Counted from the stretch's first letter, positions 38,704 to 52,006 are shown. The stretch is 64,000 nt of DNA from Macrostomum hystrix (GCA_950097015.1 CATNEN010000001.1:15996001-16060000), one strand, 5' to 3'. Notes: generated by a model not told the origin, from the letters alone. Numbers and translations: made by a program.

Positions 38704-38719
38704 GCCGTAAAGACGGTCT
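38704..38719 (+). ncRNA. Spliced-leader RNA gene, 5' part of exon (nt 1-16), interrupted
   Basis: GCCGTAAAGACGGTCT overlaps the downstream SL part by the duplicated AAAGACGGTCT; rejoining gives a 45-nt exon ending in ATG. Confidence 0.88.
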
Positions 38720-39173
38720 AAGTGCGAAATTCAGCCTAGTTCTTAGCAATCAAAAGTTTGCATACATTTTCTCATCAAAATTACAAGTCAAAATTGCCTA
38801 AATCCAACTAAATACTTGTACCAAAGTTAAAGCCACTTACCAGATTGCTTTAACCTCTAAAGTTCGCTAACTAGCATCAGCACTCGTTAATTAGGACTTA
38901 ATACTTTTAAATTTCTAGGAAACTAGAGCATTAGGCCATTCTTAATACTCACAAATTAACAAAAGTGACATTTGAAAAGTTCGGCAACTAAGCCAACTTA
39001 TCTAAATCTAAATACTTACTACTTACTTACTTATACTTATTCTTACATAAACTAATTATTACTACTCGCTTTACTTGCTTATTCGTTTACATTTCTCTAA
39101 AAATTGCTTACAAGTTTTAAGCTACTAACAGTAGCAACCACCGCGAAAAAACCAAACACAAAAATACATATTT

Positions 39174-41493
39174 TGAAATAGCTGCGGGTTTGCAATCCGA
39201 TGATCTGTCCTCGTGAAAGAAAGGAGTGTGGGGATGGCGATAGAGTCGGAAGTCATACCGCAAGGGCTCGCGAATTGCCGCGGAAAGAGGGACGAAGGGA
39301 GAGATGAAGGGAGAGACAGTGGATGCAGGGAGTGGTCCTCTCGGCCTCAGGCTGGCCAGTCCCACTCAACCCATAGGCCACAGGCATGACTGCCGTGCCT
39401 ACCCCAAGCAGTGCTCGAAACCGGCTAAAAGTCTAAATAGATGTCGGACTACCCTCAGACGGATAGGACAGGGCTATGCAGCCTACTGTCATCAGTAGCA
39501 TGTTCGTAACTGACCCCTAAACTCGGTAGCAGTGGTCGACTCGGCCTAGGCTCTTGTCTTAGAAATGCGGAAAGGCTATCGGCAAAGCGGAAAATGATCT
39601 AGGGTAGCGCCACCACCCAATGCGCCTACGTGGCCACCGCAGACATTTGGGAACTTGGGTCCCCGGAGCTCGCGGCTCCTAGTTTGTCACACAGATCTTA
39701 GACAAGCCGAAAAAATAGAGCCTTCTGTAACTTCCGTTTTAGACTAGGGCGAAGACCCCAGAATGGATCGAGACACGCCTCACCAGGGGATTCCTGAATT
39801 TGCGCTACAGTGGTCTAGAAAGGTGGTACTCAGAACCTGAAAGTGAAATCCCTAGCCAGAGTCCTACTCATGAAACATCAGACACATTCGGTACATTAGA
39901 CTGCAGCCTACACATTAGATAACTAGCAATCCGGTCTGTGTGAGTTGAGGAAAACAGAGGCAGGAGAGGTTAAGCTGAACACTGGCTGAGTGATTATGCG
40001 AGCGTAAGATTAAAAGATCATCACCCCCCACTTCCCTGGCGGTGGAAGCGGGAGGGGGAACGGAAGGGAAACTCAATTAGCAGGGGAGCTTGACACGCAC
40101 TCCCAGTTCCGCTAGGAAACGAGGAAAACCCGCCAGGGAATTCCCCACCCCTGGGCAGAAAGAAAACACGTGCTACACTCCGCATTTTACTTGCAAATCC
40201 CTAGCTCCATATTACTCTCACGCGCGCTTACAATTGCCTTCCTGCCGCAGCTTTCAGCTCGGCTGTGCCAGAGCCCGCCCCCTAGGCGATTAGCCACTCA
40301 TGACCGAGGGCTGTCTATTGATAAAATAAAGGTAAAAAGGAGACATAATAAAAGAAGTTAAGTTGTTATAAAGTTAAGCCCAATAAGTTAAAAGTGCTTA
40401 GATTGGATAGTTTATTAGGCGAAACAATCCCTAGCTTCCCTCCCACTAAAATGCCGCCTAACCAATAGAAAGCCCCTTAGGAGCAATAATTGCAAACCGC
40501 TGCGCGGATTACTTATCTGGAGTCGCTTCGGCCGCGTGCTGCAATCCCGTCGATCTCGGGGAAGGGGATCGGGTAAAATAGCAAAAGCCGGAAGGGAGAG
40601 ATGCTGCGAGTCGGCAGGGGCCAACACGCTTGGAGCTCAAGGCTCAATTTAGCAGCTCACCTAAAGAGGTGGCTCGCGCTCAGGGGGAATGGGGACAGGC
40701 AATGGGCCTGCGCTAGCTGTGGAGCTATGAGCTCTAGGGTCTATGCCCTAAATGGGTCTGGGGGATAAGTCCTGGGTCCGGTGGGAGTCCGGCCCGGCAA
40801 AAGTAAGTCCGGCAGGGGAGAAGGGGAAGAGCCGGTGGGAGAAAAGAGGTCCTAGAGGGAGCAGCGCAGCGCGCTTGCTTAAATAGGCCTTGCAGCACGC
40901 CAACCCCGACATCCATCAAAGCAACCCACATTCGCGCCAGCCTGTCATCGAGGAATTGAAGCGGCGATTGCCGCCCCAATTGCCCAATGAACCGGCGGCG
41001 GGAAACGACAGATGTTCTGCGCGAACAGCCGTCGGCAGTCAGCCAGCGATTGTTACTCCGCCGGGACAATGGAAGCGCAGGCGCCGACCTGCCTACAGTG
41101 ATATTTACATGTATCTAAAGGAAGGAGGTCATAAAAGTCGAGCTGGGCTCGAATACTGTAAAGAAGCGGGGACATGAAGAATTTTATGATCACTCATAAC
41201 GCGTGAGTGAGCCCCTATATCTGATCGCGGTTTGGAGGGGAATTATGACCTAAACTAGTTCATACAGTAACATTATGGCCGCGATCAGTCATTCCTACGG
41301 GGAGTCTAGACAACTCCGGAGAGAGAGGATTCGGCAGCTACTGGATTCACCGCCGCCTCAAACCCGGCCCTAAGATTAATGATCTTGTTTTGTGACCAGC
41401 TGCTATGTGGGTCGCAATTATTAGTTACTTAAAAATTCGAAAAATTATGCTGGCTCACACTCCCACTCGATTCCCGCAGCACACTCCACATCA
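39174..41493 (-). mobile_element. Solo LTR copy C nested in the LINE 5'UTR
   Basis: TGA...TCA termini, 4-bp TSD ATTT, homologous to copy B. Confidence 0.82.
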
Positions 41494-41795
41494 ATTTGAA
41501 ATACCAAAAATAAAAACAGTTTTACATTGTTTTATATATTTAAATTTATATATTCCTCATTTCCTCGTTCCACTCTCTGCTCCGTAGGCTCTTTTAAGTA
41601 GTCACTTGCATACTAGTCAGTAGTAAATTTAGTATCTTCGCCAGTTTTAGTTTTAGTTTTAGTGGAGTCTGGAAACAAAGGCGGCTGATTTTGATTTGAT
41701 TTGATCATACTTGCCTACCATCTATCTCTGATCGATACTTGCTCCAAACTTATCGAACTAAAATCAAACGACCGAGACTACTTACCCAAGTAACA

Positions 41796-49365: not shown

Positions 49366-49702
49366 TCTGCCCGGAGCTTTGTGACGGGTAGACTACTTAT
49401 GCAATTACTCACCATCGCTAACCAAAACCCCCATTTTCGTGTTGTCGCACCAGATATTTTTTAGATTAGATTAAAGTAGTATTTTGATCTTTGTGACTTA
49501 GTGAGTTTTATTTGAATTGCACGGCACAAGAGCACGAAACTGAGGGAAAGATATGCTCTTCTTTTTAACTCACACAAAATAATTGTAATCGTGCCTCATG
49601 GCTCCCAAAAGTAAATAATGTAACATGGCTGCAGAGTTTCGGCTAGAAACTGAACGGCCGGGGGCAACCCCATTACTACAGTAAAAAAAAGACGGTCTCT
49701 TA

Positions 49703-51907
49703 TTTTTTAGAGATAAAATCAGAGAGGCCATCTCTATATCCCGAATTACTCATCTTTTCAATGTCTGCTTTCAACTGGGCATTTTCCCAAAAGCCTGGAA
49801 GAAAGCAGTCATAACTATGATCCCAAAACCGGAAAAACCCCCGGATTCCCCTAATTCTTATCGCCCGATCAGCCTGACTTCCTGCTTGGGAAAAGTATTT
49901 GAAAAATTAATTGTCAAAAGACTCGTTGCCTTTATGGAAGAAAAGCAACTATTAGGCAAAGATCAATGTGCTTACAGAAAAGTTCACTCCACTAATGACA
50001 ATCTTGTCAGACTAGTCCAAGACATTATGACATGTCGCTGTAAATCGCAGAGGATTTTAGCCGTCTTCCTTGATGTTGAGGCTGCCTTTGATTCAGCTTG
50101 GCATGATAAAATTCGACAGCAGATGCTTGATGCTGATTTCCCAACGATGCTCATTCGCATTGTTTCCAACTATCTTGAAGGTAGAGAATTCCAAGTACGA
50201 GTCAACGAGGCCTTCAGCGACTCGTTCAAAATCCAGGCCGGTGTTCCACAGGGAGGGATCATCAGCCCATTCCTGTATCTTCTCTACGTAAGCACGATGC
50301 CCCAGCCCAATCATCCAAATCTTAATCGAAGCCAATTTGCCGATGACATGGCCATCTGGGCCTCGGCAGATACTTTCAAAGGGCTTAAAACCCTGATCCA
50401 GCCATATCTCCAGCGAGTCTGGGAATGGTGTGGCCATCAGGGAATAAAGCTCAATGCATCCAAAAGCAAAGCTATTGCCTTTCTTTATAAGCCTCCAAAT
50501 AGGCTTGATCTCCGGCCTAAACTCAAACTGGGAAACATTAGTATCCCATATGATTCACAGGTTAAATTTCTAGGAATTACCCTAGACCACAACCTGTCTC
50601 TCAATTCTCATATCAGTTCTATGGTTAAAACTGCGAATGCAATTCTAATGTCAATACTCAGAATTGCAAAACTGACTCGCCTCAGCAGCGTAACTTTGAG
50701 AATGCTATACAGAGCATATGTAGAAAGTGCCCTTACCTATGGGGCTCCGATCCTCAATAATATCTCCCTATCCAACCTGAACAAACTTCAAAAGATTCAA
50801 AACTCGGCACTCCGCATATGCTATGAGTGCCCGAGGTACACTAAAATAGAATATATACATAGATTAGCGCGCATGCCAATGATTGCCGACCGAATTCGAG
50901 CCTTCGGCATCAGCTGGCTGGTCAAAGCTCGTGCTGCTCATCTGCACGACTTTGAGCTTGAACCGCCAATCCCAAGGGGGAACAAAAGACTTCCAATGCC
51001 GGTTTTAAATATCCTTTGGACCGGCCTAAAGCGAAGAGAAGCAAATAGGCAAGCCAACCCCTAGCCAATGGCAAAGGATATTGCAAATTTTTAGCAAAAT
51101 AATCTAATTATCATTGAACTCTTAAAGTGATGCGAATTGGACTGGCAGGGCCTTGCAATGCTGAGCCAATACTGTCCCGTGCCCATAAACTAGCCTGAAC
51201 CCTAAAAAAATTGTACTTTACCTTTCCAGTTCCGGCCCATTGTTAGGTAAACTGTCAGACACCCACCACCCCGCCTATTTTCTATAGCTTACTCTTGCCA
51301 AAAAAATATGACCCCCCAGCGGCTCTAAGCCTATTCATTTTCTTTCTAAATCACTTAGAGAACATCCTCCCCTGCCCTCAAAAGTGACAGTGACAACTGC
51401 CCTTTATACCAAATTATGCTTCAGCCAAATAATAAATCAACAAGCCCAAGCCCATACGCCCACCCCAATCTAGTTCAAGCTTGAAATCTTCGTAACTCAA
51501 AACTAGAAAACACTTCTCACCCCAATATCACCTACTTGCAGTAAGCTGGTAAGAAACTTGCCAAATGTATAAATATTTTAAATGAAATATAAATAATAGC
51601 TTGACAAATGCATTCGTTTTAATCCTCAATGCCTACCAACACATCCACATTGCATGCTTTTAGATTCTCCCTGTTTTATCTGATCCCCTCTTTGTGACGG
51701 ATCCCCTTCTTGATGTTATATTCCCATGCAATGCCAATATTTATTTTATTTTAATTTTATTTTTTAAATTCTCTAAATACCTCGTTACATTAAAAAATTC
51801 GCAAACTTGGCAAAAAAGTTTTAAAATGCCAAAATAGACTATGCAGCGGCGGCAGAGCCCCTCACGGGGCTGATCCGCGGGCAACTTTGCCCCATCGTGT
51901 AATCATC
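49703..51907 (+). mobile_element. 5'-truncated second LINE of the same family at the same SL site
   Basis: 15-bp TSD AAAGACGGTCTCTTA (49688-49702, 51908-51922); RT ORF to 51064 clearly homologous to, but diverged from, ORF2 of the upstream element. Confidence 0.9.
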
Positions 51908-52006
51908 AAAGACGGTCTCTTACTGCGAAGACTCAATTTATTGCATGGTAAGACACCGTTGATCCAATAATGGATCTATATTTTTAGCAGCCCTCTAAGG
52001 GCTATC
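51908..52006 (+). ncRNA. Spliced-leader RNA gene, 3' part (exon nt 6-45, donor, intron with Sm site)
   Basis: AAAGACGGTCTCTTACTGCGAAGACTCAATTTATTGCATG|GTAAG; hairpin GATCCA/TGGATC; Sm-like ATTTTTAG (51980-51987); terminal hairpin AGCCC/GGGCT. An exon ending in AUG is a flatworm SL trait. Confidence 0.9.

Follow-up and report, generated by a model that had tools for sequence, protein, structure and literature searches.

Recurrent insertion of LINEs with an apurinic/apyrimidinic-type endonuclease into spliced-leader RNA genes of the flatworm Macrostomum hystrix

A 64,000-nucleotide stretch of the Macrostomum hystrix genome, here called the window (C1:15996001-16060000 of the 220-Mb, 42-contig genome), contains a spliced-leader (SL) RNA gene that is interrupted by two long interspersed nuclear elements (LINEs), designated A and B, stacked at one site. 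We hold with good confidence that the locus is one ribosomal DNA (rDNA) unit with a U1 gene and the SL gene in its spacer, into which two LINEs of a single Macrostomum-specific clade were integrated in sense orientation through target-primed reverse transcription (TPRT), and that this clade has a strong preference for SL sequence, not an absolute rule. The data support the existence of an SL-targeting LINE family whose endonuclease is of the apurinic/apyrimidinic (AP) endonuclease (APE) type.

The stack is read most directly from its junctions. The window has exactly three copies of the sequence AAAGACGGTCT, at 38709, 49688 and 51908 (0.04 copies expected; none of 100 shuffles reaches three). 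Reading from the left, the spacer leads into TTTGCCGT-AAAGACGGTCT and then into element A; A ends in CAGTAAAAAAA, followed by AAAGACGGTCTCTTA and the start of element B, TTTTTTAGAG; and B ends in GTAATCATC, followed by AAAGACGGTCTCTTA-CTGCGAAGACTCAATTTATTGCATG-GTAAGAC. The target-site duplications (TSDs) are 11 bp long for A and 15 bp for B, and the middle target copy (49688-49702) belongs to both elements, positions 49688-49698 being the right TSD of A and 49688-49702 the left TSD of B. These TSDs set the boundaries of A, a full-length LINE at 38720-49687 (10,968 bp, or 8,640 bp without a nested long terminal repeat (LTR) and its duplicated ATTT) that ends in A7 and is the single copy in the genome at 100% identity. 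B is a 5'-truncated LINE of 2,205 bp at 49703-51907 that is broken off inside open reading frame 2 (ORF2) and consists of the reverse transcriptase (RT) part of that frame to 51064 (RVT_1, 9.4e-36), an 843-bp 3' untranslated region (UTR) and an ATCATC tail; both elements lie on the plus strand, as do the SL gene pieces, the U1 gene, the open frames and domains of A, its 3' RNA motif and its nested LTR described below. Over RT residues 470-917 B is 58% identical to A, in keeping with the proposal in the initial annotation of the window that the two are diverged but related LINEs, and direct reading reproduces all of its coordinates for the three target copies, the junctions and the TSDs. It had also stated that either order of insertion fits the junctions, and this holds because all of the TSD copies are identical.

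The two elements are flanked by the pieces of one SL RNA gene. The 5' piece (38704-38719; exon nt 1-16, GCCGTAAAGACGGTCT), which includes the left TSD of A (38709-38719), is continuous with 720 bp of upstream spacer common to 14 intact units. The remainder (51908-52014) begins with the right TSD of B (51908-51922) and comprises exon nt 6-45 (51908-51947), a GT donor at 51948, an Sm-like AUUUUUAG at 51980-51987 and a 3' stem-loop. Window positions 38000-38719 and 51908-52494 align at 98-99% identity to one continuous stretch in 14 paralogous units, each stretch has a single AAAGACGGTCT, and the two alignments overlap by exactly those 11 bases. The 14 uninterrupted rDNA-spacer units therefore indicate that 13,188 bp was inserted into a formerly intact SL RNA gene, and together with the fold described below they bear out the earlier claim that removal of the inserts rebuilds a complete gene.

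The same units bear on a different origin for the flanking SL pieces, namely that they are trans-spliced leaders of element transcripts that were carried along at retrotransposition. This reading has been offered for parasitic flatworms, in which 597 loci have partial leaders beside mobile elements (PMC12582326), and the roughly 20 dispersed SL-exon retrocopies in the M. hystrix genome lend it some plausibility. At the present locus, however, no more than nt 1-16 of the exon stand ahead of A, joined to 720 bp of native spacer that includes U1; the remaining exon bases come after B, together with the GT donor, intron and Sm site; and the target is duplicated. We give carried leaders next to no chance and reject them for this window, the 14 intact paralogues showing an uninterrupted gene. 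A false repeat join that created an apparent stack is hardly more probable. Units of rDNA are difficult to assemble and this one has other insertions, but the TSDs are exact at both junction types, and contigs of four independent runs, of unspecified kind, match A's ORF1 without a difference over pieces of 1.2-1.7 kb; none of the contigs compared spans the SL/A junction, and they bear on the presence of A and on an LTR-free form of it described below.

The interrupted gene has all the features expected of an SL RNA gene: a GT donor, an Sm-like site, three stem-loops and multiple copies. The predicted fold of an intact copy (L017:1497-1608) consists of three stem-loops (-34.7 kcal/mol, z = -4.2); stem 1 contains the GTAAG donor, and AUUUUUAG is single-stranded between stems 2 and 3. 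The 103 bases from 51908 recur at 100% identity in 17 other loci, on the small contigs C15, C17 and C42, at a spacing of ~11.6-11.7 kb. [quoted passage not shown] The exact 22-nt SL core has 110 genome copies in 220 Mb, against none for a reversed control. About 20 of the 110 are dispersed, with the full exon joined to non-intron sequence, and most of these start at (G)CCGTAAAGA behind unrelated flanks; they look like retrocopies of trans-spliced RNAs. Since the retrocopies start at GCCGTAAAGA, the 5' end of the exon falls at the G of GCCGT and the exon is 45 nt long, the length originally assigned to it. A second gene family, SL-B (GCCGAATTCAGTCGGTCTCTTACTGCGAAGACTCTCTTTTTTGCATG followed by GTAAG), is arranged together with 5S rRNA in a 927-bp tandem array located at C39:12.667-12.75 Mb. 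As for the setting of the interrupted gene, a U1 small nuclear RNA (snRNA) gene lies upstream in the spacer (38248-38410; Rfam RF00003, 151.6 bits, E 7.8e-39) and Rfam finds 18S and 28S rRNA downstream in the unit carrying the stack (an 18S start is also present in L053), which places the SL gene within the 45S rDNA spacer. The 18S of this unit is itself split, with Rfam matches at 54276-55499 and 59261-59667, ~3.8 kb between them and the 28S starting at 61895; the gap suggests another insertion in the same rDNA unit.

ORF2 of element A is a 963-codon open frame at 45111-48002 that encodes an APE domain followed by an RT (Pfam Exo_endo_phos_2, PF14529, 7.5e-14; RVT_1, PF00078, 2.8e-32). In an alignment with 19 relatives the APE catalytic columns N28, D155, N157, D236 and H237 are invariant and E55 is nearly so, and the RT has its FADD box (QFADDMAIW). 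A profile of the ORF2 alignment matches the L1 endonuclease (L1-EN, 1e-24) and the TRAS1 endonuclease (TRAS1-EN, 2.3e-17) in the PDB, as well as cellular APE1 (~1e-10) and ExoIII; a PDB search with the APE domain alone gave no match, and matches in the ESM Atlas are generic 'endonuclease-reverse transcriptase' clusters only. The Pfam matches, the catalytic residues and the PDB profile agree with the initial description of an APE-type LINE family. Apart from these two domains the Pfam scan of ORF2 found no RNase H, protease or restriction-like domain, and nothing after the RT, so that ORF2 has neither the restriction-like endonuclease downstream of the RT that marks the CRE clade nor the restriction-like endonuclease and protease of the NeSL clade. 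R1/Tx1-type elements have a conserved Cys-His motif after the RT, and no Cys-His motif in this region is conserved between A and its relatives. Jockey/I-group elements have an ORF1 with three CCHC knuckles and an ORF2 with APE and RT but no RNase H; A has three invariant CCHC motifs, and its ORF2 combines APE with RT and lacks RNase H. More distant ORF2 matches carry RNase H (PF00075), the closest foreign relatives (P0001-P0003) are 41-51% identical, and the sole named match is a barnacle protein, 25% identical and auto-labelled 'transposon BS'. The features fit the Jockey/I-group placement proposed in the initial annotation as a resemblance, the outgroups of the RT tree being unnamed.

Insertion into SL sequence is not confined to the window. 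ORF2 of A has ~50 scored relatives in the genome and 1008 first-look candidates, and the flanks were surveyed in a sample of the relatives, with the cluster at C1:23.23-23.26 Mb read in part. At C1:23.26 Mb three short elements are stacked in the order X-GACGGTCTCTT-Y-AAAGACAGTCTCTTA-Z-AAGACGGTCTCTTACTGCGAAGACTCAAT, and their host looks like an SL retrocopy. Lineage D (54% identical to A) occurs twice in the 5S-linked SL-B array with a common 5' junction, GACTCTCTT then CATTC, and with 3' junctions before GCGAAG (TSD of 14-17 bp) and before CAGTCGG (TSD of 30 bp). Lineage E (41% identical to A) is found in C17 and C42 with the TSD TCAGAATCTTTGCCGT, which corresponds to positions -11 to +5 of the SL-A gene, and its top-strand cut falls at the same bond as the nick of A and B. 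The landings of A, B, D, E and the short X, Y and Z are in two SL families and the SL retrocopy, either in the first ~40 nt of these or 11 nt upstream, and every SL-resident copy sampled is in sense orientation; SL insertion recurs at four separate SL-bearing places and involves at least four lineages. Random insertion into a given 20-bp SL window has a probability of ~1e-5 (given ~110-130 SL sequences in 220 Mb), and there are at least seven independent SL events (A, B, X, Y, Z, D and E) among the few dozen copies examined, with the duplicates of D and of E reduced to one event apiece, since they could be products of unequal crossing-over. Set against chance at ~1e-5, these events argue that the SL association is real, but that it is a preference. 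A 10-kb gap in the SL-B array (C39:12694781-12705927; L083, L084) was considered as a further case and discarded, as it reflects an insertion in the spacer and not in an SL gene.

Several observations weigh against this reading or limit it. A sequence 99% identical to the last 597 bp of B (L036) sits at an unrelated site with a TSD of its own, TCGTGTTCAC, and a second member of B's lineage (L037) is likewise outside SL sequence, as are the X-like copies L032, L034 and L085 and lineage E2. Of the copies of lineage C, at least 10 in number, none is in SL; their flanks vary, and they include head-to-tail tandems on C12 and C29. Among six exact copies of the short 3' motif in the genome, three are followed by SL and three lie elsewhere. 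The pair of D copies may go back to one event, as may the pair of E copies, which would leave about seven independent events and not 10. With regard to A itself, its ORF2 has no ATG before the catalytic Asn and shares its frame with ORF1, from which three stops separate it, and its 5' end matches no Rfam family, HDV-like ribozymes included. The missing ATG may reflect an unconventional initiation that is normal for the clade and not a defect: lineage E also has no upstream ATG, the first ATG of C is at the very start of the APE domain, and D has a normal start. It is not the case that nearly all copies occupy one target, as strict site-specificity would have it. The initial annotation had called the family SL-specific and had named unrelated flanks on most copies as the finding that would overturn this; such flanks are what we see in the clade taken together and in B's lineage, and they argue against strict SL-specificity, while the recurrence of SL insertion in at least four lineages, far beyond chance, stands. 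Some of the off-target sites resemble the SL target (CCGTAAAGCGTAAGCGGC at L034 and TATGGTCGA at L032), an observation that serves as a lead only. In the lineage C arrays (C12:3.68-3.70 Mb and C29:3.90-3.93 Mb; L038-L040, L044, L055 and L080) the head-to-tail copies have a period of 6.5 kb and each passes from its 3' end AACAACAAAG directly into the 5' end ATTTCCGTGGAGAGG of the following copy; these tandems could stem from self-targeting, template switching or unequal crossing-over.

The off-target copies raise the question of whether the elements are ordinary non-specific LINEs, with the 5' region of SL genes acting as a hot spot made by the host (open, heavily transcribed and prone to nicking) and B having entered the poly(A) tract of A. 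Close relatives at unrelated sites with normal TSDs and a sister lineage, C, that has no SL association are what this account would lead one to expect, and if A was inserted first, the nick site of B, GTAAAAAAA^AAGACGG, was an A-rich tract. A hot spot of this kind does not, however, account for the three-deep pile-up in an SL retrocopy that has neither the SL upstream spacer nor the intron, nor for four lineages that entered two SL families within the same ~40 nt and always in sense. As for the poly(A) part, the off-target sites of B's lineage are not A-rich, and B's sister D entered SL-B where there is no neighbouring poly(A). We therefore consider the account improbable overall; it retains some probability for B alone, but leaves D, E and the retrocopy stack unexplained, and a preference of the elements for SL sequence is the reading that we favor.

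How this preference is distributed within the clade can be seen from the RT tree, in which the nine Macrostomum sequences form one clade (100 by the Shimodaira-Hasegawa-like approximate likelihood ratio test, SH-aLRT). B is sister to the SL-B-resident lineage D (98 SH-aLRT; 70% identity), the non-SL lineage C stands next to B and D, and the SL-resident lineage E is sister to the non-SL lineage E2. Because the SL residents A, B, D and E are interspersed with C and E2, the use of SL sequence may be ancestral and repeatedly relaxed or, alternatively, may have been gained several times. Specific and non-specific sister lineages at 50-70% identity provide natural material for mapping the residues that set the target, which is of interest for engineered site-specific insertion.

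The closest parallels lie in the trypanosomatids, whose SLACS, CZAR and CRE1-2 elements are likewise non-LTR elements that enter multicopy SL RNA genes in sense, close to the 5' end of the exon. The insertion position of SLACS/CZAR/CRE is SL exon nt 11/12. Their restriction-like endonuclease is C-terminal to the RT, whereas that of the Macrostomum elements is N-terminal and AP-type, and the latter differ further in the phylum of the host, in having two ORFs with an AlkB-bearing ORF1 and in the leakiness of their specificity. NeSL-1 of nematodes is another non-LTR element at an SL exon and is specific for SL1 (PMC4640811), but none of its features, a restriction-like endonuclease, a protease and descent from U2-targeting Utopia elements, applies here. 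SL exons are thus established targets of non-LTR elements of the CRE and NeSL clades, which use restriction endonucleases (PMC4640811). Like the Macrostomum elements, R1, TRAS and SART and the Tx1-clade elements Keno and Mutsu are of the APE type and insert sequence-specifically into multicopy RNA genes or repeats; the targets listed for the R1 and Tx1 clades comprise rRNA genes, telomeres, microsatellites, snRNA, 5S and tRNA genes (PMC4640811) and lack SL genes, the target here. A full-text literature search for an APE-type LINE that targets SL genes found none, within an incomplete coverage of the literature, and so agrees with the initial annotation, which had described the known SL-targeting elements as restriction-like in type.

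SL targeting has so far been published only for unrelated elements of trypanosomes and nematodes. What the present locus adds is a site at which two different lineages are stacked, lineage A with its single intact copy, a nested LTR that is recent or polymorphic, and clear evidence of off-target landing by B's lineage. If an AP-endonuclease clade does target flatworm SL genes, it would have converged on a multicopy 'safe harbour' whose use is a textbook character of the early-branching restriction-endonuclease LINEs, and proteins would have found a second, independent way to read one short DNA sequence. For Macrostomum genomics, the family accounts for interruptions in SL, 5S and rDNA units, and counts of SL genes should be made with it masked.

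Two further parts of the elements offer handles on mechanism that can be tested. The first is an AlkB domain in ORF1. In A, ORF1 extends from its first ATG over 41796-45071 (the frame is open from 41739) and has a disordered, low-complexity N-terminus followed by an ALKBH3-like, AlkB-type 2-oxoglutarate/Fe(II) dioxygenase domain at 42720-43121 (PF13532, 7.3e-20, residues 328-461) and three CCHC zinc knuckles at 44115-44282 (invariant Cys/His columns C794...C847; Pfam zf-CCHC match). Lineage A has the longest ORF1. At 28-37% identity to one another, the ORF1 proteins of lineages A, C, D and E all have AlkB (PF13532, 1.6e-18 to 8.7e-29) with the motifs H384-x-D386, H442 and R455-x-S-x-T-x-R461 invariant across the four lineages, that is, with the HxD...H iron triad and the RxSxTxR 2-oxoglutarate motif of this dioxygenase family. 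The closest solved structure is that of ALKBH3 (6e-20), ahead of ALKBH2 (~2e-10); ALKBH3 acts on single-stranded DNA and RNA. Genome-wide there are 68 AlkB matches, mostly in long, LINE-like frames of 700-1100 codons, and five equally scoring copies of an 853-codon AlkB frame were noted on C1, C9, C11, C38 and C39. A protein search, in which the word filter makes a negative result weak, returned no long proteins with the AlkB region of ORF1.

An AlkB demethylase domain is also present in the replicases of flexiviruses, where it is fixed within the polyprotein of an RNA virus. Among retroelements, an AlkB-type domain is fixed inside Ty3/Gypsy elements of orchids (PMC9289625), and by analogy with these the likeliest role for the domain would be the demethylation of element RNA or cDNA. 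The Macrostomum elements differ from both precedents in that the domain resides in the ORF1 protein of a LINE, which is gag-like and carries CCHC motifs, and our full-text literature search, again with incomplete coverage, found no report of AlkB in the ORF1 of a non-LTR retrotransposon.

The second part is an RNA motif in the 3' UTR (49628-49671 in A), which consists of a helix P1, an AGAG/CUGA internal loop, a hairpin P2 and a GGGGG-CAA-CCCC hairpin. P1, the invariant AGAG/CUGA loop and P2 are common to all lineages. In the motif alignment 97.6% of cells are paired, seven of nine pairs show compensatory change and none of 500 shuffles reaches the score, while controls slid along the sequence fall to 22-55% paired; this covariation test covers P1 and P2, and the third hairpin is read from the sequence.

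The SL insertions are in sense orientation, of TPRT type and with TSDs of 11-30 bp. For A and B, the bottom strand was nicked between exon nt 5 and 6-8 (GCCGT^AAAG) and the top-strand cut lies further downstream, by 11 bp in A (after GGTCT) and by 15 bp in B (after GGTCTCTTA). We suspect that it is the SL DNA sequence itself that is read, by the endonuclease or by ORF2p in its entirety, and gene context would not be needed because the SL retrocopy has been hit three times. The duplicated segment would contain the recognition sequence, so that each insertion would leave a usable target on both sides and stacks would follow. Multicopy SL genes would provide a safe harbour, and resident copies may be read through from the SL promoter, a possibility with which the SL bases at the 5' ends of two lineages are consistent: the first bases of Y are the SL-B-specific GACTCTCTT and those of E are CGGTCTC (a matching prefix of at least 9 bases occurs in 0.1%, and one of at least 7 in 0.6%, of random 20-mers of the window). 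The 3' stem-loop could serve as the recognition handle for the RT, and the ALKBH3-like domain could remove base methylation from the RNA template or the cDNA. One attractive but tentative extension, for which we would claim clearly less than even chances, is that these elements are a separate, undescribed LINE clade whose APE has converged on the SL target of the restriction-type elements of trypanosomes and nematodes, that they ride the SL promoter such that their RNA starts with SL bases, that the AlkB of ORF1 is needed for retrotransposition by cleaning a methylated template, and that the recognition site borne by the TSD amounts to a compact landing pad that is naturally re-targetable.

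The 5' UTR of A proper comprises 38720-39169 and 41494-41738, and is divided by a solo LTR at 39170-41493 (TG...CA, 2,324 bp, 4-bp TSD ATTT) that is nested in A and not part of it, as judged from its ends and from related copies in the window. Such copies lie at 30684-33005 (90% identical) and 28485-30581 (81%). They form a tandem pair ~100 bp apart at 28.5-33.0 kb that resembles terminal-repeat retrotransposons in miniature (TRIM) or large retrotransposon derivatives (LARD), and another copy of the LTR adjoins the short element X at C1:23.26 Mb (L033). The LTR is absent from an A-like copy (L081), and contigs of the public runs X2 and X4 join 39169 directly to 41494. These contigs therefore show an LTR-free A in other samples of the organism, with a nested insertion that is recent or polymorphic. 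The first bases of A (38720-38736, AAGTGCGAAATTCAGCC) resemble the start of the SL-B exon (TTGCCGAATTCAGTC) at 12 of 15 positions with two gaps, a weak resemblance with no exact k-mer match, and may be a worn, co-transcribed SL-B leader.

Leader sequence was also seen in two other contexts. In a repeated element at L059, L076 and L056 (C3:9.79 Mb, C39:11.25 Mb and C1:23.235 Mb), a full or worn SL exon directly follows a conserved CTCGGCCTGAATTGGCTCAC end and is itself followed by CATAAGAAATC; the copy at L056 also has a long open reading frame, and the element looks like a retrotransposon with a fixed trans-spliced leader. At L058, L064, L071 and L073, the SL exon from nt 2 directly adjoins an antisense tRNA-like sequence (CTAACCACTAGGCTACAA then CCGTAAAGACGG).

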